64,000 nucleotides of DNA from Vicugna vicugna (lineage: Eukaryota), in NCBI GenBank assembly GCA_013265495.1, contig MU060965.1:496001-560000 (forward strand), in the 5' to 3' direction. The notes below the pieces were generated by a model. The model did no database searches. It had not been told where the DNA came from and saw nothing but the letters and a program-made list of their open reading frames with translations. The position numbers were made by a program, and so were the translations under genes. Shown here piece after piece: positions 990 through 34,412 of the stretch (position 1 is the stretch's first letter; the number at the start of each line of letters is the position of its first letter).

Positions 990-1325
<336 letters not shown>

Positions 1326-2345: not shown

Positions 2346-4469
2346 GCACACCTGATAAAAATAAAGTTTCTCTCAGGACTAACAAGGTACTGAGATGCAC
2401 TCAAGGAACAGGCATCATTATAACAGTATTTGTTGAAAATGAGGTTCTGGAGCATCGTTCCAGCTGGCAGGATTCTGAGAGATGTGGGAGCAAACAGCCC
2501 TTCAAAACTGGCACAGCTGGACCTGGGCTACTGGGACGCGGGCTCCCTCCCTGAAGGCAGCCCCTCAGACAGCCTCACCTAGGAGGAACAGCACCTTTGG
2601 CAGAAACAGTTACTGCTGACGGCTGAGATGCCAAGTCAAGCTGGGTCCTTCGGCTAAATCTGAGGCAGCAGAAACCCTGTCGAAGATGCTAGAAGCAACT
2701 GCAGACTGTCTGGCCTACGTCAGCGAAGAGCAGAGGGATGAGCTCACTGCCTCGTTCATCCAGTGTTTACTGAGCCCTGGCGGGTGCTACGAACCCCGCA
2801 GCCAGAGCCAGAGAAAGATGTAATGTCCCATTTACACTTCTACTGAGTTACGGGGACACAATGACACGTGTTATGTCACCAACGCAGAAAGAGGTGATGA
2901 TGTCTGTTCCAGAACTCTCGGCTGGCCGGCTAAGAAGGCACCGGTCCAAATCCGTCGCGTCTGGTTCCTTTGCGTACCTCCGGTATGTGTGCACTTTCCA
3001 TTTCAGTGCACTCAGTCAGGGAGGTAACTCGCGTCAGCACAGGCAAATTCTAATGTTATGAGATGTGTAACTTCCCACGAGGAAACAGCCACACTTAGCA
3101 GACCACGTGACACCTAAAAAGTGGGTGACCACGGCTGTGTATCCTGGGATGAGGCCCCGTAACATGGCGGTGGCTCCCCTGACGTGGGACCAAGACCCCG
3201 ACGTCCAGTGGTGAGCGTCTGAGCAGCAAGAACAGAGCCAGAAGACCACGACCCCAGAGAGAGCAACTCTAATGTTCTGACATTCTCGGCAGGCTCTGAG
3301 CACACGTGACTCAAATGTAACAGAAGAGACAGAGACCCGTGGGTGTTTGAAGAGCCCGTGTCGATCACAAATGCTCTGGTGTCTACAGGAAACAACTCAC
3401 ACAGCACCTTTTCCCCACTTGACTGTAGATCTCGGGAATAACAGGGCCGCAGGCCGCCACCGCTCACACAGGGTCACCCGAGTTCTATGACCTTCTCTGC
3501 ACAGAACACGACATGTCAGGCTCCGTGAAGCCTCGAAAGGTGCTGTAAAACTGTTGAGGTTTTCATTAAGTCAGCTCTTTTGTATAGAATAAATGCTCCC
3601 AGAATCACAGGCTTGCAGGTGGAGGAGGCCTCGGTTTTCCCTTTGGGGATGTGGCCTCGGAGGCCGCACTGAGGTCAGGAGACGTGCCCAGGCCCTGCAC
3701 CCAGGGGGCCGACCCCCAGACTGAGTCTCAGGCCTCACGCCCCCTCCCCTCCACAGCCTCTGTCCTCTTTGAAACTTTCTGTGCAAAAGGATGAGCGGTG
3801 CACACACCGCAGGTTCACACAAACCTCACGTTGCAGGTGATGCTTCCTGCACACTGAGCAAGTCACACATTCGGATGCGGCCCAAGCCACACGTTTTAGG
3901 CACACACTGTGTCTACGGGAACCCGGCAGTGAACTTCCTGTCTCCTGGGAAATGACCCCGATTTGTCTGTCTCATAAACTGGGTTGTGGGCCAGCAGCAG
4001 GCACACTTGTGACGTGAAGACCTTTCCAACCAAGGGAGGGTCCACGAGGAGCTTCTCAGAGCGCAGGGCGGGCAGCGAGGTGGACGGCTCACCCCCGGCA
4101 CGGCCCCCCCCTGCTGCTCCCAGCCGCACCGGACGGGCCCCCTGACAGGGCGAACCCGGGAGAAACCGGGCAGTGACGTGGGGCAGACACACCTCCTCCT
4201 GCGTGTGACGGGGAGGACCCCGTCTGGGATTTCTTGGGACAGTGACGTGTATCTTAGCTTCCAAAGGTGTGAGCCGCACGGGAGGGTGGGTACTCACGCT
4301 ATGGAACGTGGAAAGGAGCCAACATGACTTCTGAATCTATAATTTATCACACACAAAAGAAATCTTTTTCATGGAAAAATGCCTTTTCAAACGTAATAAA
4401 ATATATTTTTAAAAAAGCATCTTCATGAACCTTCTGAGGCAGGTCAAGTCCATCATGAGACGTGAAGCA

Positions 4470-4552
4470 GACCCGCTGGCTCGCGGGCAGTTAACTACAC
4501 GAGCCAACTGTGGTGTCGCATAAAATCAGTAAAACGATTCTCAGAGGGACAT
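4470..4552 (-). pseudogene. DCUN1D2: Possible DCUN1D2 exon 7 remnant
   Basis: Good acceptor TTTTCTCTTTAATCTTCTCTAG| followed by CGTTTTACTGATTTTATG, resembling the codons for PVLIDDFV. Confidence 0.35.
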
Positions 4553-5677
4553 CTAGAGAAGATTAAAGAGAAAACAGGTCTCAACTCTAGACATCTGGTA
4601 ATTGAAAAAATATGGACCTCAATCCTGGCACCAAGCGTCAAGCCGCCAGAGCCCGCGACAAGGAGCAGAGCAGAGGCGACAAGCCCTGACGGAAGAACTT
4701 CTCCCTGGAGAGAAAGAGACCAGAGACGCGGCGCTGAAAGGCGCAGCACGTCCCTGAGGACACGGCCTGGGGCTGAGACCAGACCTGTGAGCGGCGCTGC
4801 TGGCTTTAAAGCAAAAGGGAAACGTTTCTTTGGGCACCAGGCAAAAGCAGCAAGTGGCAGTAAGGGGAAAAGCAGACCGTCCTCAGACGATCCAAGGGCA
4901 CCTGAGGGGAGCGCAGCAGCGTGCGTAAGACACAGAAAGAAAATGAGGGCAAAGGCTTCATGTCAGGAAAACCGTTCTCCGCCCGCAGGGACTCGGGCAC
5001 CTCCTTGTGCTCGGGGTCCAGCACGAGCCTCAGGATCTAAGTGACCAGGACGCCGACGTGCGGACCGGTGACAAGACTCACCACCCGCACGACCACACGC
5101 CGCGACTGCACCCACGTCCAGAGGGAGACTCGGCCGTGTGCTCAGCGTGGACACAATCTACTCCTTTAATGGGGGAGAATGTACAACCTTTAAAGAGTTC
5201 TCAGTATTTATACCGACGGTGGCAGAAAAAAGGACATGCAGTTGTAACAGAAGAGCCGAAGTGGAAAACCCCAAAGCCCCGTAGTCCTGAATCTGAGCCG
5301 GGAGCATCAGCACAAGGAGCGGAGGACCCAGCCGACGCCAATGAGCATCTTGCTGCCTGGATCACGGCCCTGGAGCAAGATTCTCCACTGACAGAAACTG
5401 GGCTCCTGGGAGAAACGGCTGATCCCGGGCCTGGGGCGGGAATGGGCCAACCCGCCCAGCCGCATTGAGGACGGGGAGCGCGGCTGGGGACACAGACGGG
5501 CAGCCTAAGCTCCCGGTGTCAGAACTGCAGTCGACTGAACCTTCGCGTACGATTAAACCCAGGAGTTCACACAGCATAAAAGATAAATAAATAAACATGA
5601 ATCCTTTTTAAAGGATGCTACGAAAACAAGTCGTTATCTTGATGACAGGTGAATCCAGGCAAATGATCGGCACTTAC

Positions 5678-5740
5678 CCTGCCTTTTCTCAACGAACTGG
5701 GGCTCCTGGCAGCAAACCCTGGAAGGTGGAAGGATTATTC
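5678..5740 (-). pseudogene. DCUN1D2: Possible DCUN1D2 exon 6 remnant
   Basis: Strong donor CAGG|GTAAGT at 5677. An upstream pyrimidine tract ends TTTTG|GAATAA (AG lost). Internal similarity is weak. Confidence 0.25.
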
Positions 5741-7279
5741 CAAAAGAAGATGAGACGGAAGTGACAGAATTAGAACGTCACCCTCCACGCTGTGTGACGC
5801 CGGCTGAGCAGCGGCCTGGCCAGAGGCGAGGTCTGACCCTGACAGCAAACGCCACCTGCCGTGGTCCTGAAGCCAGAACCGCGTCCCCCAGGTCCCCGCA
5901 TGATGCCCACACAAGTGTTCACCCAACCACTCTGTCCGTTGCATGGTGACGCATCCCACCTGCCACCCCAGGGTGTCAAAGCGCTAGAGACAGTTCATAC
6001 ATTTTCCTCAGTCTTCCTAGCACGACTGAAATGGAAGACACCACCGGGGTTGGCAACCTGAGAGCAGGTCTCATGGGAGGGTCTGCAGGGTGGCAGGGGA
6101 CAAGACCAGGTTCCTGGCACCTGGACCCTCCCCAGTGTCCCGCCCTCGGCGGTCACTGCACCCCTGCGGGTGTGCTGATTCCTGCAGAGACAGCGCCTGC
6201 AGGTGGAAGGGAACGGGCTACAACACAACAAATACAAAACAGAACTGGAGCTGGAAGTATGGACGGGGTGTGGCTCCCCTGTGTGTGTGGGAGGTGACGC
6301 GGGGCGGAGGTGAACCCAGCACCAGACTCCCAGCATCTGTTTTGTCACCTGAGGGCCCAGTGCAGGGGCCGATGCATCCTCACAGCACTTCACAACAATG
6401 GTGACAGCGCCTGGACGGAGCCGTCTCCCCTTCGGGGACTGGTGCGTCCAGTCTGTCCTGGGCCATTCCTGCCCTGACAGCCAGGTGGGGCAGTGCTGCA
6501 AGGACTCCCCGGCCTTTCTGTCGCACCTGCTGCTTCCAATGGAGGTGGAGGCGTCAGTGCTGAGAGAGGTGTGGCTGCTCAGGACCCCGGAACCGCGGCA
6601 GGTTTCCCACACGAGACAGGAGCACAGCCCAGGACTCAACAGCCGAGACCGAGCCCCTCAGAACACGGGACGCAGGTGAAGGGGCAACACCTTGGCCCAG
6701 ACCCCGGCTGAGGGGGTCCTGGCGTGTCCCGGGAGTGTGAGAGCCAGTGGGAGGACAGATGGGAGGACGTGGAGGACAAAGACCAGGAGGAGGCTGAGCC
6801 AAGGCCAGCAAAACCACCAGAAGAGGACGGACAGGCGAGACAGGCCCGACTCCTCCCCGAGGGCCAGACCCGGGCTGCCGCCCGCGAACCTGAGATGCCC
6901 AGGGCTCCAGGCCACAGTCGCCACGGCCCCCAGAGCATGTCAGGCAGCCCACCAGGGAGGTGTGAGCACACGGATGGGGGAGGGCGGCCTCCACGCCTGC
7001 TGTCACGGCCCGTATTCCTGCCTACACCTCAGTCTCCCGTTTATAAAACGGGCCATGGCCACGTGTGCACCAGACGAGGAATGAAGCCAGTTTCTACCCT
7101 CCTTTCCGGGAACAGGTAAAAGACAGAAGCAGCCCACTGCCCGCTCAGGCCAGTCCCGTGTCTCGAAGACACAGAGGGATGCCAGCGAATCCGGGCGACA
7201 GGCTGCCTCCCCGCGCCAGCTGGCCCTCCCTGCCAAGCGGCCGATCTTAAGACCGCTGGCTGATCACACCCCGGCCGGA

Positions 7280-7362: not shown

Positions 7363-7959
7363 CTGAAAACTAGTTTACAAGTTAAAATGTGAATGTTTAA
7401 CCCCAGAAGGCAAGTGTGAATTGGCTGAGGTGTTCACCTGCTCGTGCAGAGCAAAGTGGGGAGAGAAAGAGACGCCAGCAGGACCCAGGTCCACCCCGCC
7501 CAGGGCTTCCTGCTCTCCTGACCCTCTGCCTCCCGGGGGAGTGAGCGCGAGGGTCCACCTGTAGTTTTAATCTCCCTCCTGCCCCCGCCGCCGCGGATGA
7601 GGCTGAGCGCCTGCTGTGTTCCCACCGGCCACCTGGAAATCACCTTGCGAAGGGCTTATTCCAGCCTCTTACCCGCTGTCAGTTAGGTCATCTTTTTCTT
7701 ACCGTCGTGTGGGAACCCTTCATCGGGGAGGCCCGCACACCCTCGTCAGCTTTTCGCCCTCTCAGACAGCACGTGTGCCCCTCTCCACCTCCTGAGGGCG
7801 CTCCTTGGTCAGAAGGCCGTATTTTCAGCCTGACACGCTGTCAGTCTCCTCCTCGGCGTTTCCTTGAGGACGTTTACAACCCTCCTACGCACGGCCATGA
7901 AGACATCCTGCCCCATTACTTTCTAAAGGTTCCTGCCTTCAGCCTCTGGCCCTGAGATC

Positions 7960-10400: not shown

Positions 10401-12040
10401 GCAGGTGCTCTGACCGGAGTCACGAGTCAGTAGCCAGGAGAAGTGATTAGCTGCCCTAACCGGGCAGACACAAAAGCCAGGGTGCCTCTCAGAGCCTCGT
10501 GCTGTTTAGACCAGAAGCAGACAGTCCTCTGCATCCCCGAAAGCACGAGGTTAAGTCTACAGCACAGTTACTAACACGTTCACACTTTCATTTAACATGG
10601 ACAGCGTCTGAATACTTACAGCTGCCCGCGAGCTGCAGCCAGCAGTCCCTCAGCCACCATCAGCCTGCAACCCTGACTCACGACCTGTGTGCTCCAAGAG
10701 GGCGTGAGGTCACCCACAATGTTTGGGGAGATTCACACTCCAAACTTTAAAAATGTAGTTTTAAAGTTATGACACTTAGTAGGATGATGGACAGGAACTT
10801 CAACAACCGACTTGTACAAGGTAGTTCTAGACAAAGCGTAAGAAATGCCCGTCAGCGTCTCTGTGAGGGGCGTTTGCGTCCAACGTCCCCCACCACGGGG
10901 CGGGTCCAACAGCAGGGATAATGGGCAGAACAAGGCCAACGGTGCCTCCTCCCAGGCGCTTCTGCCCCAGAACCGCCAGCCAGGCCTCGGGGCTCCCTCA
11001 GTGCAGGCAGCACGAACAAGCTCGCTGCTACGCCACCGTAACTGTGGTGGCTTTCATCTGGTCGGTTTTATACAACTACTGGAAGGTGGAAAGATACTAT
11101 GAGAATTAAAGAAAGTCTCACAGTGTATCATCTCAACAGACTCATGTTTAGTGAGAACACCACCACCCTGTCCACACAGTCTTAAGAACGTGTTTACCTA
11201 AGGCTTTCAAGCTCCTTCAGCAGCTAAAAATAAGTGAGTTGTCAACACTGAAATATCAGAGCATCAGAAAGTCAGCAAGCCGGCTCCTGCGCCCTGGTGA
11301 AATCATTCACGAGGCTTAACAATCACAAGATGCTTGTCGTGCACTTCTGTCTACTCGTCTGAGTCACTAACAAGTAAGAAACACCTTAAGGTATTAATGG
11401 AGCTTTTATTCAACCCTGTACGTAGAACAGAGAAATGTCACAGGCAAAAAAACAAATGACATTTTATTAGTGCTTAATATAGCAACACAATAAATTTAGC
11501 ACACAGTATTATGAAGTAAACTGAACGGCTGAAAACAGGCAAACAAACAAAAAAACCTGGATGTTTATTGTCAATTCAAAGCTGGAAGGAAAGAAATTGA
11601 AAGAAGAAAGTGAGCAGCTGCATCACTGTCTCGCCACGACTCTTTCCGTCTCATAAAACTACGGTGACCCGGCTCTTCCTCCCCAGACACTGGCAGCATC
11701 CGTTACCCCCCGTGCCCTTCGTCCCCATGAATTTGACTAATGGTGAGTTTTGTGTCATGCGTACTGTAACACAATAAAAAATGAAAAACTATACAAATTT
11801 TAAAAAAATGAAATGCATAAAATGCTACATAAGGGATTCATCTGAATAAGAATACTGAACAAAACTTTAGCTGAAATTCAAAAGAACAGCGAAGGCTTCA
11901 CTAATGGTACAAATGCGTGAGAAATCTGTGAAACGCACGAAGAACGTAAATCGGTGCAAACTTGCAGGCTGCTGAGAACCAACTCGCACTGGCCGTGCCC
12001 TCCTTCCTGCAAAGGGTCTAACTGAGACGAGTTTACTTAC

Positions 12041-12207
12041 CCGAGCTGTGTCATGCCGCCTGCAAATCCCTCTTGCTGCATCCACACCGACTCGCGGCCC
12101 CCAGTCTCCAGGCTGCACCCAGAACGCTGACGCAGCAGGACCCAGGCCGGAGCCACCACAGAGCCGCCGGGTACCCTCGGCTTCCACTGTATTTCCATCT
12201 TGCGGGC
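12041..12207 (-). pseudogene. DCUN1D2: DCUN1D2 exon 3 remnant (start of the PONY domain)
   Basis: Acceptor TTTTAACTGCAG| and donor CTCGG|GTAAGT. It reads PQDGNTVEAEGTRRLCGGSGLGPA / VSVLGAAWRLGAASRCGCSKR / FAGGMTQLG in three different frames. Length is 167 nt versus 169 expected. Confidence 0.88.
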
Positions 12208-14435
12208 CTGCAGTTAAAATTAAGGGGGAAAACGTTACACTATTTTGAAAAGTATCACTAAAGCGGTGGTGAGCACCACACCTCTACACGTAGTTCTACA
12301 AGCACGCTCAAATGCATCAGTCAAAGCAACTTTCTACGATACATGAAAGGGGCAGCAGCAAATACTGATTTATCCAGAAAATACTCTTATCTGAAAATCC
12401 AGCTTTCTGGGTTTAGGGGGAAAAAGTCACTGAAACTCCTTTGAAAGCTTCATCATTAGGAAAAAAATTTAATTTCCCTGAAGTAAAATGAAAAGTCACG
12501 TTTACAGAATTTTAGCAATTTAGGCAAACTACTACAAAACACACTGAGTTGGTGAAGTAGTTACAGTATGTTTTCATCACATCCTTGCCAAAGTAAAAGA
12601 AAGATCAATGCTTTTCTTTTAAAAGTGACTTCATTTGCTGGAGTTCTACTGCTATGCACAGCACATATTTTTCAGTCATTAAGCATCCACATTTAACAGC
12701 TTACAAATTCAGGCTCCCGCCTCCTTCCATTTCTACTTTAGAAATAAAATTAGGGAACTTAGCATTTCTCCATCAGAAAAATCAAACAGTGAAATCTCCA
12801 AGCCCTCACCCAAGCAGGTGGGGTGACCCGAGACCGCGCGTCTCCGGACTTGGCGTCACGACCCGCACGCTCACCTGCTGACTGGAAGGCGCCAACGGAA
12901 AACCTGGGCTCCTTTGCGCAAACGGATATTAAGTGCAGTAAACCCTCCTTCCATCACACAAAACTTAACATTTAAGTGCTAAATACCACGTTTTCACGTG
13001 TGTGTTGTTACCAGAGAAGAGCTGATGAGACCCTAATGAAGAAATCACAAAGGTCCTCCGTCTTTCCTCTCCCGGGCCAGGGAGGGAACCTGCCGCCCGG
13101 GCTCTCAGGACAGAGGCTTGGGGATGTGGTGACTCAGTGTCCTGCTCGGTCTGTGCTGCTGACGTGACAGACCTTGGGGACGGTGGAGAAACCGGTCCAC
13201 GCGGCCTCACCTCACAGCCGTCTTTTTAACGGTCACGTGTAACGGTCGTGACTGTGTCACGGTCACTGGGAAGCACTCGCTCATCTGCACGCATTGCTGG
13301 AGCAGCCGATGTGCCATCAGCAGCCGCTGAATCACACACTTATTGTGGGACCCAAAATGGCTGGACTGTGGACCTTAATAACCAGACCTACGCGAACACA
13401 GTTAAATGATGAAGGACGAAGCAGAAAGTAAAGAACGATTTTCATATAAAAATACTTTTCTGAAGAGGACTGAACATACTTGAATAACTTAAAAACCCCG
13501 CATAGCATATGACTGGAAAATTAGCTCAACAATTAACTTAGCCAAAAAAATTGAAAGCACACTGAAGCTTAATTGAAAACAATGTTCATTTTTTAAGAAC
13601 TACAAGTACAAATCTGTTTTTTTGACCACAGAACATGTTTTGGAACCAAGATTTTTTTTTTAAAGAATGGCAATTGTCAATCAATTTTTTGGATCTAAAC
13701 AGACAGATTAAAATACACATGGTTGTTTTCAAAAGTAAAAAGTGAAAATAATAAAAATTTAAAGCCAAGGGAACTTCAATTTCGGCTAATACTTGTTTAA
13801 ATGAGGGGTTTCGTTTCTGGTTTTCTATTTTTATGTTTTGGAAATACAAGATTAGCCTTAGAAACTGCTAGAAAGAAAAAATAAATCAACTCTGGAATTG
13901 CGGTGGCTCTCGCGGGACATCACAGCCCGGACACCTGAGGCAAGATTTTGCAGCCTGCTGAGCGCGCACTTCTCACGCAGATTTATTTCTGCAGCGAGAC
14001 TGCATCCCTACGGGAAAGGGTCATTTAAGTGCTGATTTTAATAAAAAGAACAACTGCCCCCAGCTCACAGCACGCGGCTCCCTGGCACGAGCTGTCCGGA
14101 CGCTGAGACAAGGGCAGCTGCTCCAGCAGCACCAGGCGCGCCAGGAGGAGGCTGGCTCTGCCCCTCGCACCGCAGCTACTCTTAGGGTTTGCTCCCGCTC
14201 TTGACCAGTCTCTTCCCAGCTCTCCCGGCCTCAGTGGAGCTGCTGGGAAGACACTGCACCTCCTGGCCTGGACCTAGTTGTGGGGCAAGGCCCACCGGCA
14301 GCAGACAGACAGTGGGCTCCGGGTTGTCTGGTCAGGGCAGGAGTCCCCCCCGGCCCGTCTACCGGACCCCAACCGGCTCTGCCTGAGCACCGAGTACCGC
14401 CAGGGAAGGAGGTGGGAGACGGACCCCGTTCTTAC

Positions 14436-14597
14436 CCCTGCACGCGGGGGACAGCTGCCCCGCCTGGGCTCCGGGTCAGGAGGAGCCGTCCTGGCCTCAG
14501 GCAGGTTCCACGCATTCCAGGCCGAGCAGCAGACGCGGTTCCCTGAGGAAACGTCACACGCCAACAGACCCACCGGCTGAGACAAGTCGAGCTTGTG
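14436..14597 (-). pseudogene. DCUN1D2: DCUN1D2 exon 2 remnant (UBA-like domain)
   Basis: HKLDLSQ..LLAC..CCSAWNAWNLPEA aligns with HKLKSSQ..FMAC..YCLTQNEWRLDEA. The acceptor reads CCGGG|CAC (no AG) and the donor is G|GTAAGA. Length is 162 nt versus about 217 expected. Confidence 0.8.
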
Positions 14598-15199
14598 CCC
14601 GGCGGGTGGAGAGGCAGGAAAGCCTGAGTCCGCGTCCGTCCCCGGCGCCCCTGCCGTGACTGACTGCTCTTAGTCTTTCTTTGCTGGGTGGTCCACTTCC
14701 CTTCAAATTTCAGGGTGACAAAGCCTTGTTCTTCATCAGTTAAGAGGGCTGCACCGTCTTCTGAAGTGGAAATGCGTGTCCACGTAGTAACCAGGATGCA
14801 AAGGCTGGCCTTCAGAAGAGTGTAAGAACCAACCTTTTATGCAAAACACGTTTTGATCTCTATCCAGCCGCTTCCCATGAAGAAGGGCAGTTTTTTTCCC
14901 AGGTCTCAGTGACATCCCTCTTTATAAAACACATGCACCCTCTGATGAGATGAGGCCTGACACCACCTCAGCTCATCTGCGGTTTCCCTTGGCTTCAATC
15001 AATGTCAGGCCCTAGAGAACAGGAGGAGGGCCTTGCAGTTTGGAGATATTTTTATTTTAAGTTTTCTCACTTTAAAATTAGCAGAACAACACTGATGAAA
15101 ACAAACACATGCCACAGGGTTAAAAATAATCGACAGAAGTTCCAAACGCAGGCTCAAAAAGCCTGTTATAACTCAATGAAGATGATACTAAAAACAAGG

Positions 15200-20439: not shown

Positions 20440-20442
20440 CAT
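20440..20442 (-). pseudogene. DCUN1D2: DCUN1D2 exon 1 coding part (ATG only) with donor
   Basis: Minus strand reads GGGGAGAATG|GTAGGT inside the CpG island. DCUN1D1/2 have an ATG-only first coding exon. Confidence 0.75.
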
Positions 20443-20573: not shown

Positions 20574-20660
20574 GACTCCAACTCCCGGCGTGCACTGCGC
20601 CGCCCGGCGGCCGACGGGATCCAGGCCGCAGGCCGCCTCTGACTCCCGACGTGCACTGCG
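20574..20660 (+). promoter_or_regulatory. Two ZNF143/Staf (SBS)-like sites within a 61-bp-period direct duplication
   Basis: GACTCCAACTCCCGGCGTGCACTGCG (20574-20599) and ACTCCCGACGTGCACTGCG (20642-20660) resemble ACTACAAnTCCCAGnATGCA(C/T)YGCG. Confidence 0.6.
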
Positions 20661-20899
20661 CCGCCTGGGGACCGACGGAACCCACGCCCCGCCTCCTTAA
20701 AGGGGCCGCGACGCTCTCCTGGCTGCGTCGGCGCAGACGGCGTTCTGAGAGGGCTGCGGGCGGCCAGGGGCCTCCCGGTGACTGACCGCGTCCCCATCCC
20801 CGTCCCCGCCCCTGGGGCGGCCCCGCCGCCGTCTGGGAAGGGATGTGGAGAAGCCGTGTCCGTGTCCTGCCCTCAGCCTCGGGCGCCGCAGAGCCGAGC

Positions 20900-24387: not shown

Positions 24388-24831
24388 ATGTGGGGCTTGG
24401 GAGGGCTCCTCCTGTGGCTGCTGCTCCCGCCCCTTCCCCTGCCAGCGGGCGCCGCGGAGCATGAGGAGGTGGCGAGGCAAGCCATCAAGTTGCACCGGGG
24501 CAGAGGGGTGGCGGCCACCCAGGGCCGGCGGTGGGTCCTGGATGGATGCAGGAAGCTCTCTGGGCTTCTTCGCCAGAAGGCTGTGGTTCTTAACAAACTG
24601 AAAAATGCAATCAGAGCCGTGGAAGCTGACGCCAGCCTCTCGGATGAAGAGAAGCTGTTCCAGGTGCACACGTTTGAAATCTTCCAGAAAGAGCTGAATG
24701 AGAGTGAAAACTCAGTCTTCCAGGCCATCCACGGCCTCCAGAGAGCCCTGCAGGGGGACTACAGGGATGTGGTCAACATGAAGGAGAGCAGCCGTCAGCG
24801 CCTAGAGGCCCTGCGGGAGGCAGCCATCAAG
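24388..24831 (+). CDS. TMCO3: TMCO3 first coding exon (exon 2): signal peptide + coiled coil
   Basis: Acceptor CTCTTTCAG| at 24307 and ATG at 24388. Reads [13 protein letters not shown]...[17 protein letters not shown]...LREAAIK, 444 nt, donor |GTCGGT. Confidence 0.95.
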
Positions 24832-31525: not shown

Positions 31526-34412
31526 GTGAGTCCTGTCTGTGTGACTGTCATTGCTCTGCGTGAGCCTCGGCCCCTGCTCGCTGTTTACGCTGGTTTGTGA
31601 CTTGCCTGGCAAGTTAAGTGTTTAGGACAGAATGTGACGTTTTAGTTTGACATTATTTTGGAACAAACTTCAAAAGATAACAGTTTTTAAAAAAAAGGTG
31701 AAAGTTCAATGAGTAAATGAAATTAGCTTTCATGTGACTAATTCTAAAATAAGTCTGAGAAATGATACATTCAGTCACTTTTGGGGGCCCCTCCAAGAAG
31801 GTCCAACACCTTCAGAGGCCATAGTATCACAGGAATTGAACATCCCATGTGTTACCCTGGGAAAAAATTCCTGGTTCTAATTCCTAAGTAAATGGCAGGT
31901 TTTGGCTTCCTGTTCCATCACTGTAAAACGAGGTGTCTGAGAGGTCAGTGGTAGTTGGGACCGTGTGTGAATAAACACTGAAACAGTGGAAGCAGCACTT
32001 CCTCCTGAATGTGTTTGCTTTCAGAATTATTGGCTTGAACGCTGCAGTGTTTCAGGATGGAAGTGAATTAATGAGGAGCTGGTCTGTCTTTGCACAGACG
32101 CACACAGAAGAGGGAAGGCTGCTGGGGGGAGAGAAGGGCGGCTGGTTACAAGCCTGGTCCCGCCCAGTTTTGCCTCCAGCTTAAGGAGGACGCCAGTGTC
32201 CCGGGCTGGACCTAGTTGCTCGCCACACGCATGTCCTTTCTCTGAGCCTCCCGCTCCCGGGTCTGTCCGAGGGGAGACTTTAGTACGAGCGCCTTGGGCT
32301 CTGTTTTAAAGCTAACCCGTGAAGGCGGTCAGCTCCTCGTTGCAGCGTGTTATACGCGAGCTGAAGCAGCCCGAGTCCCCTGGCTAGACTGTGGCAGAGC
32401 TTCTTGCTGGAGGCGACGCAGCCGTTACAAATACTGCAGGAATGGGTAGTCACAAGGGGGACATGTAAAAGTGCCAGAACGCTACATTCAAAAGAAAACC
32501 GTGGGCCTTCCGCGTGACTCTGGCAATGCACCAGGAGCCCAGACGCACGGGAAATAACGCCCCCGGCAGCCGCGGGTGCCCCCCACCCCGTGCTCTCAGA
32601 CCCTCTGGGACGCCAGGCGTCCCTCCACGACGAGCAGCAGCGAGCTTCGGCCGAGGCCTGGTCTGCCGTCCGGGAGCGGCTGCTGCGGTCCTGCTGGCCT
32701 CCCCATCCCCCAGCGCCACCGCCTCTCTGGCCCTGTCTCCTCGGCCTCCTCCTTCCCTGGTAGAAGCTCCACTGTCCCGTCAGCTGCTTATTCTCACCTC
32801 CTTTCAGCCGTTCAGAGTCGGGTCCGTGTTTTCTCCGTGTGCGTTTGTGTCTTTTCCACTTCTGGCGGGGTTACCTCCACATCTTAATTTCTGAATCCAG
32901 AGTTTGAAGAAAATGGGCCACTTTCCTGGGTCTTAAGGAAAACTGGCCGAATTACTCCTGTGACCTCTGGGGATGTGTGTGCAGCAGCAGGGGCAGAGGG
33001 AACCCGGCGGGGACACGGGGCCTCCAGGGTCTCGGGGGCAGGGGTCCCCTCACGGCAGCTCTGAGGAAGCACGGCCCCATGGGGGGCACCGCTGGCTCCT
33101 CTGGGTGAGCTGCGGGATTGGGAGCGAGGCGGGCGGCGTCACCGCACGGCCTTCTCAGCCCCAGCGCCTGCATCACGGGGAGACGCGGGTTTCATCTCGT
33201 CTGGACTGTGACGGTATGTTTCCTGGCACTGTAGTGGTCAGTGTTGGATGAGAGAGTGGAGTTCCTCAGTGTGACGTCTGCTACCTTCATCAGCGTGATG
33301 ATGCTCTGTGGCGCTCTGGGGCTCTGCATCTGGCGACGCAGCCTGGGGGTGGGTGGCTTGGGAAGGCACATCTGCGTTGTGAGTTAGGGGAGAAGCTTGG
33401 TTGGGGAACAGGCCCCTGTTGGGTGCCTTTCGGTCTAGGGTGAGCTGGGGGTCTCTAATGTCCCCTCGGCTCTGACGTCCTCAAGTGCCAGAGACACCGG
33501 CTGCCCCCTGCCGGGCAGCCCTGACCCTGAGCTGCACTGGGAAGGTCTCCCGGCCTCCCTAGGCCCGTGGACCCTGGGTGCAGACGGTCTGCTTCGGTTT
33601 TCCTTTCATTTCTCAGGGGTATGTGACTGACACAGCTGTGGAGCAGCCTCAGGTGAGCGCTGCGATTGTCCTGAGCTGACAGGACTCCTGCCCTGTGGGT
33701 CCCCCGGGCGTGTGTCCAGGTGGGCGCTATTCAGGAGGGTTTGGACGTACCTCCAGTTGCTGGAAGGCTCTTCTTAGGTCATTGGTGAAACCGCCAGAGG
33801 CCTGACGGAAAACCAGTCAGACATGCCTGAGTTGAGGAAGTCCTCCTTGTCCCCGAGGACACACTTCTGTCCTGCCCACTGGTGCCCTCGACTGGCGTTT
33901 ATCTGCAAGGCCCCCGGTGCCTGGTGCCCCCAGACTCCTCCTCACGTAGGTGCGACATCACTGGAGGTGGCGCGTGGTTTCTTCTGGTACCTCTTCCTGC
34001 TTGAGGACTGGCGTTCCAGACACTGGTGGCTGCTCACGTGGGTGTCAGGCACTGTCTGCAGTCTGCATGGTTCCTGCCCCGGCAGGGCTTCTGTTTCAGG
34101 GTTTCTGAGGATGTGTGGGGTTGTTGGCAGGAGTCCTGGAAATCTGAACTTTTGAGAAACAGCTCTTGAGGGTGGACCTCTCCCCTCCTGATAGGACAGT
34201 GGGGCCTGGTCGGCCAGTCACAGCTGAAGATGGACAGCGCTCCATGTCGGGGCTAGGCCTCTGTTCAATTACCTGTGGGCTTCTGCTGTGTGGCCTGGGG
34301 CTCCTGTAGCTCATTTCCTGAGGTCAGACACCCCCGTGGTGGGCGAGCAGGTGGCAGCTGTCCCGGCTGTGGTGCCACCGTGCCTGGCGTGCCGCCCTGT
34401 GTTCTCTCCCAG

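Follow-up and report, generated by a model that had tools for sequence, protein, structure and literature searches.

DCUN1D2 is a helper in cullin neddylation and one of two UBA-carrying neddylation co-E3 genes. Its closest paralog, DCUN1D1, has the same domain layout, does the same job, and is a drug target in cullin neddylation. Known structures cover the human PONY domain of DCN1-like protein 2, the product of DCUN1D2 (PDB 4GAO), and full-length DCN1-like protein 1 (PDB 8OR2 chain F), which shows the layout of UBA-like and PONY domains shared by the two genes. In a full-text literature search, no account of a mammal that has lost DCUN1D2 turned up.

We analysed a 64-kb stretch of genomic DNA from Vicugna vicugna, which is called the window below. 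A DCUN1D2 remnant was found on its minus strand, flanked by ADPRHL1 and TMCO3. The gene for DCN1-like protein 2 and the window share the same neighbourhood, an exon 1 that contributes only the ATG, and the positions of exons 2 and 3. Unlike that gene, the window holds no translatable UBA-like or PONY domain; exon 2 has lost its acceptor, frameshifts affect both exon 2 and exon 3, and no trace of exons 5-7 can be detected. DCUN1D1 belongs to a different locus. The DCUN1D2 genes of sheep and wapiti (loci L002, L005 and L006) occupy the same locus as the remnant, and their exon 2 is disabled as in vicugna. Ruminant exon 2 is, however, far better preserved, with 216 nt that still read HKLKSSQKDKVRQ..., and the two lesions that it carries, a TAG at a Trp codon and a 1-nt deletion, are both absent from the vicugna remnant.

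The DCUN1D2 locus and its orthologs

The first coding exon of ADPRHL1 was found at 1040..1256 on the minus strand (the coordinate of its 3' end is approximate). It reads open, and its counterpart lies at 32832 in the sheep locus L005. TMCO3, on the plus strand, extends from 24388 to about 45.6 kb. It appears intact, and its first coding exon (24388..24831) fixes the synteny. DCUN1D2 and TMCO3 stand head to head in a CpG island at 20-22 kb. The ATG start codon of DCUN1D2 exon 1 (20440..20442, minus strand) lies in this shared island and is followed by an intact GTAGGT donor; both ATG and donor are near identical to the annotated starts of the DCUN1D2 coding sequences of zebra and blue whale. 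The same head-to-head layout of ADPRHL1, DCUN1D2 and TMCO3 is likewise found in the loci of sheep, wapiti, zebra and blue whale, and the sheep sequence is collinear with the window along the entire locus. The DCUN1D2 part of the window contains no assembly gaps. Its position, its exon 1, and the homology and order of exons 2 and 3 are those of the DCUN1D2 ortholog.

The orthologous loci were collected with the first coding exon of TMCO3 as the query, and mammalian TMCO3 loci were taken with 10 kb of flank. DCUN1D2 exons 2 and 3 were reached from a sheep TMCO3 model whose start lies within the CpG island (L002) and from the wapiti locus (L006), and the sheep gene model P0239 (L005) supplied the whole sheep gene. 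The flanks from warthog, Myotis, blue whale and zebra extend to DCUN1D2 exon 1 only. Among the TMCO3 matches listed, warthog was the closest, with 86% over the first coding exon, and no camelid TMCO3 was among them.

Two repeats were also noted in the region. Inside the DCUN1D2/TMCO3 CpG island, at 20576-20688, there are two copies of a 52-nt unit that are 83% alike and 61 nt apart. A minisatellite at 2157-2363, in which a GCACGTCAGACACACACCT-like unit of about 19 nt is repeated at least 9 times, sits between the start of ADPRHL1 and the former 3' end of DCUN1D2.

The exon 2 remnant

The segment 14401..14597 on the minus strand, 197 nt under the best alignment, is very probably the remnant of the UBA-coding exon 2 of a unitary DCUN1D2 pseudogene that is still in its ancestral position. 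A preliminary description of this DNA had assigned a shorter segment, 14436-14597 (162 nt), to DCUN1D2 exon 2, and the assignment to this exon is borne out by DNA alignment and synteny. The support for the identification is modest in the sequence and strong in the position. The remnant occupies a gap between two blocks collinear with sheep, one ending at 14839 and the other starting at 13896. Its start is anchored by a polypyrimidine block at the end of intron 1, ggctttcctgc (14614..14624, minus strand), which is conserved in both sheep and wapiti as ggctttc[ct]tgc. The block is followed by CAYAAGCT and TCTCAG. A tblastn match at 14677-14621 (KTKSSQSRQ...) was considered as exon 2 and rejected; its E value was 2.9 and it overlaps the conserved end of intron 1.

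At the 5' end of the exon, the minus strand reads ...ccacccgccggg|CACAAGCTC, and the His-Lys-Leu codons are immediately preceded by GG at 14599-14598. The upstream reading is ...ctccacccgccggg, then CAC AAG CTC from 14597, and translation from there onward gives HKLDLSQPVGLLACDVSSGNRVCCSAWNAWNLPEA... The junction is cccagAG|CAT in sheep and wapiti and gccggGG|CAC in the window. Because both ruminants have AG at the acceptor, this comparison of sequences confirms the change of AG to GG, as described previously, to be a real derived change, and 14598..14599 on the minus strand is a destroyed splice acceptor. The distance from 14597 to the G before GTAAGA, at 14436, is 162 nt, as had been counted. 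The frame of the 5' reading (HKL...) is not that of the 3' reading QAGQLSPACR, also in agreement with the preliminary description. Under either placement of the 3' boundary discussed below, the 5' and 3' parts of the exon do not share a frame, its length differs from 217, and the ancestral frame cannot be read through.

The 3' end of the exon differs from what had been proposed. The preliminary description took GTAAGA (14430..14435, minus strand) as the donor, and had the exon end with the codons for QAGQLSPACR after a deletion of about 55 nt. We aligned the exon together with 300 nt of intron to its counterparts in sheep and wapiti. For both references, and whichever of three scoring schemes was used, the unconstrained global alignments crossed the exon/intron boundary at 14401|14400, that is, 35 nt further. 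Forcing the boundary to 14436|14435 cost 46-54 units under +5/-4/-12/-2 and proportional amounts under the two other schemes. With the boundary at 14401, GTAAGA aligns on AGG-AAG-AAA codons (Arg-Lys-Lys) and would more likely be derived from these codons within the exon. The position orthologous to the donor in the best alignment (14399..14400, minus strand) reads GC; it is GC in sheep and GT in wapiti. The remnant of 197 nt compares with 216 nt in both ruminants through indels of -2, -10, -6, +2 and -3 (net -19), so that the better alignment replaces the deletion of about 55 nt with a net loss of about 20 nt across five small indels. The 3' end of sheep exon 2 reads ...SVDRKKLERLYNRNK, matching DCNL1 residues SLDRKKLEQLYNRYK. 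The final 23 nt before 14401 align at about the level of chance (counted by eye on the three-way alignment).

It is unlikely that GTAAGA at 14435-14430 was the ancestral donor, with a remnant of 162 nt and about 55 nt of the exon deleted. A GT is present there, the last 26 bases of the exon together with the donor match wapiti ungapped at about 56% (counted by eye), the run GCAGCTGT / GCGGCTGT is similar to Glu-Arg-Leu-Tyr codons, and the identity of the exon under the 14436 boundary is 0.63-0.65. This placement, however, requires an additional deletion of 22-33 nt, and its score is lower by 46-61 units on exon 2 alone; with the intron included, it also scores lower, by the amounts given above. 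With the alternative end at 14401, about 30 additional columns are aligned and gaps do not exceed 9-10 nt. As the C-terminal codons of the exon, QAGQLSPACR does no better than the competing reading, and the pairing of CRGKNGVRL with VDRKKLERL fits better than that of AGQLSPACR with LERLYNRNK. Since identity is about equal under both boundaries (0.61-0.65), the preference for 14401 comes down to fewer and smaller gaps. The old exon thus probably ended at 14401, and GTAAGA was probably not the ancestral donor.

The DNA alignments against the two ruminants were compared with controls. Within the 13896-14839 gap, the top-scoring local match to sheep exon 2 begins at 14597 (z 3.5; the score was reached by 2 of 200 shuffles), and this is the exact start of exon 2 in sheep and wapiti. 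The global alignment score at the pre-specified place was reached by 2 of 1000 controls for sheep and by 1 of 1000 for wapiti, the controls being GC-matched random segments of the window. The identity of the remnant to ruminant exon 2, itself disabled in both reference species, was 52-53% in a three-way MAFFT alignment and 0.61-0.65 in pairwise global alignments. Stringent local alignment (+2/-3) detected exon 3 only. The pairwise alignment to the orthologous exon, which the preliminary description had suggested as a check, thus supports homology with a different 3' boundary. An intact exon 2 elsewhere between 12.2 and 20.4 kb had been named as evidence that would speak against the assignment, and neither an intact nor a better exon 2 was found anywhere else in the 64-kb window.

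Searches with the translated remnant returned no relatives. No DCN1-like chain was matched by phmmer against PDB (E up to 10), no Pfam family, UBA_4 included, was matched (E up to 10), and a search of 5.8 billion proteins gave zero relatives. In a BLOSUM62 scan against the N-terminal 49 residues of DCNL1, a reference verified against PDB 8OR2 chain F, the remnant scored 30, which is at the 99th percentile of the window and not its top, and is not significant within the window. Because the searches at the protein level gave nothing, the visual recognition of exon 2 has no statistical backing at that level.

We also considered whether 14401-14597 is GC-rich intron sequence of no kinship to exon 2 that resembles it by chance, the true exon having been deleted. 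The nil signal at the protein level, a DNA identity of just 52-65%, and the one or two in 1000 GC-matched random segments that score equally would all agree with this. The place was, however, fixed in advance by collinearity, the alignment begins at the precise start of the exon, the conserved polypyrimidine block lies immediately upstream, and the distance to the flanking collinear blocks fits. These points make a chance resemblance quite improbable.

With the segment read as the exon 2 remnant ending at 14401, the exon is disabled by the change of its acceptor from AG to GG, and several small indels (net about -20 nt) disrupt its frame. The donor position most likely became GC, and GTAAGA most likely arose by chance from the Arg-Lys-Lys codons 35 nt upstream of the old exon end. 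Exon 2 is by now so diverged that it is recognisable only through DNA alignment with its orthologs and through its position.

Exons 3-7 and the state of the gene

The exon 3 remnant was found at 12041..12207 on the minus strand. It is 167 nt long, compared with 169 nt, owing to two 1-nt deletions, and both of its splice sites are kept (cag acceptor and gtaagt donor). Its identity to wapiti is 65%, and its local DNA alignment score was 79 against a shuffle mean of 24. The translation of exon 3 no longer matched any DCN1-like chain.

The splice flanks of exon 3 (12208-12233 and 12020-12040; ttaattttaac.. cag and gtaagtaaact) are almost identical to those of the ruminants, with the interior 35% diverged. 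Such conservation may be due to chance, or it may point to residual non-coding splicing. When compared with sheep and wapiti, a tract of about 450 nt centred on exon 3 (11900-12370, minus strand) is extremely biased towards AT-to-GC changes. Within exon 3, weak-to-strong differences number 48 and strong-to-weak differences 2, and the G+C content is 66%, compared with 37%; the flanks beyond the tract show no such bias. The tract looks like the product of a local burst of GC-biased gene conversion, which may have sped the decay of the exon.

Little was recovered of the remaining exons. A doubtful remnant of exon 4 lies at the collinear position (7570..7650, minus strand), where the sheep codons for YQFTF...PGQKG align weakly and without significance (z 1.2). 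The interval in which exons 5-7 are expected (4660..7279, minus strand) measures 2.6 kb, against 7.4 kb in sheep, and holds no detectable homology. DNA alignment to sheep gave no signal of exons 5-7 in the window, and fuzzy peptide motifs for exons 4-7 matched nothing in it. Homology resumes in a block at 4310..4659 on the minus strand, which aligns at 63% identity across 365 nt (E 9e-24) with sheep sequence located 3' of the stop codon of DCUN1D2.

No PONY (cullin-binding) domain can be made from this locus, because exon 3 carries two frameshifts, exon 4 can hardly be recognised, and exons 5-7 are either missing or beyond recognition. Neither a PONY domain (Cullin_binding, PF03556) nor a UBA-like domain (UBA_4) is encoded in the window, and disabling lesions lie in more than one exon at the ancestral locus, as in a unitary pseudogene. 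Judged from its sequence, DCUN1D2 is dead here, a pseudogene because its PONY domain cannot be encoded. The lesion in exon 2 is, as the preliminary description had it, an independent inactivating one, and it is one of several in the dead gene. That the gene is alive, as a fast-evolving DCUN1D2 or one alternatively spliced to skip exon 2, is extremely improbable. The exon 1 ATG and donor and both splice sites of exon 3 are intact, and frame 0 of the exon 2 remnant is open across all 197 nt, but at 67% G+C chance alone is expected to leave frames open. Leaving out an exon of 217 nt changes the reading frame. Exon 3 is itself frameshifted twice, with a translation that matches no DCN1-like chain, and the cullin-binding core is encoded by exons 5-7, of which nothing can be detected.

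The pseudogene is a case of ordinary gene loss via accumulated disabling mutations. We infer that no other functional copy of DCUN1D2 is present in the genome, and the loss would have been tolerated likely through redundancy with DCUN1D1.

DCUN1D2 in ruminants and other mammals

Exon 2, 216 nt in length, lies at L002:6872-7087 (-) and L005:12577-12792 (+) in sheep and at L006:2581-2796 (-) in wapiti. In both sheep assemblies and in wapiti, it carries the TAG at the Trp codon and the 1-nt deletion in common, and the window retains TGG at this codon. Because these two lesions are common to sheep and wapiti, exon 2 was disabled before the bovid/cervid split, and the loss of DCUN1D2 is not confined to the vicugna lineage. 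The heavy decay of exon 2 in vicugna had been ascribed to an old loss, and this fits the data.

Further changes were found in the sheep gene. Exon 4 (L005:21775-21880) has an in-frame TGA, a GC donor and an altered FKDFYQFTF motif. In exon 6 (L005:28332-28425), one Leu codon is missing, and in exon 7 (L005:29129-29222), the VLIDDF motif has Arg in place of Ile. The sheep model P0239 (424 aa) skips exons and is chimeric, joining a reading frame from the CpG island to part of exon 2 and the last exons. Exons 5-7 are still recognisable in sheep, and exon 3 is open in both sheep and wapiti. The best match of wapiti exon 3 was DCN1-like protein 2 (PDB 4GAO, E 2.5e-30). Sheep and wapiti differ in exon 3 by 6 non-synonymous and 2 synonymous changes (counted by eye), a pattern that looks neutral.

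The annotated DCUN1D2 products are truncated, at 108 aa, in wapiti (L006) and, at 156 aa, in blue whale. In zebra, the gene is intact, and a 270-aa product with UBA_4 and Cullin_binding is annotated. No DCUN1D2 gene was called in the TMCO3 flank of warthog. DCUN1D2 is thus also disabled among the pecoran ruminants, and perhaps more broadly within Cetartiodactyla. Since no lesion common to vicugna and the ruminants was seen, the gene may have been lost once or several times. We put forward only tentatively, as somewhat less than an even chance, that DCUN1D2 was lost across much or all of Cetartiodactyla, once ancestrally or repeatedly, with the decay of exon 3 in vicugna sped by the AT-to-GC burst.

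Taken alone, the lesion in exon 2 is one further lesion in one further dead gene. The state of the locus indicates that a mammal can do without DCUN1D2, which is consistent with redundancy between DCUN1D1 and DCUN1D2. Sheep and wapiti, and perhaps whales and pigs, are also without an intact copy. If confirmed, this would be an order-wide natural knockout of DCUN1D2, and such a loss would account for the odd short or chimeric DCUN1D2 models in ruminant and whale annotations.
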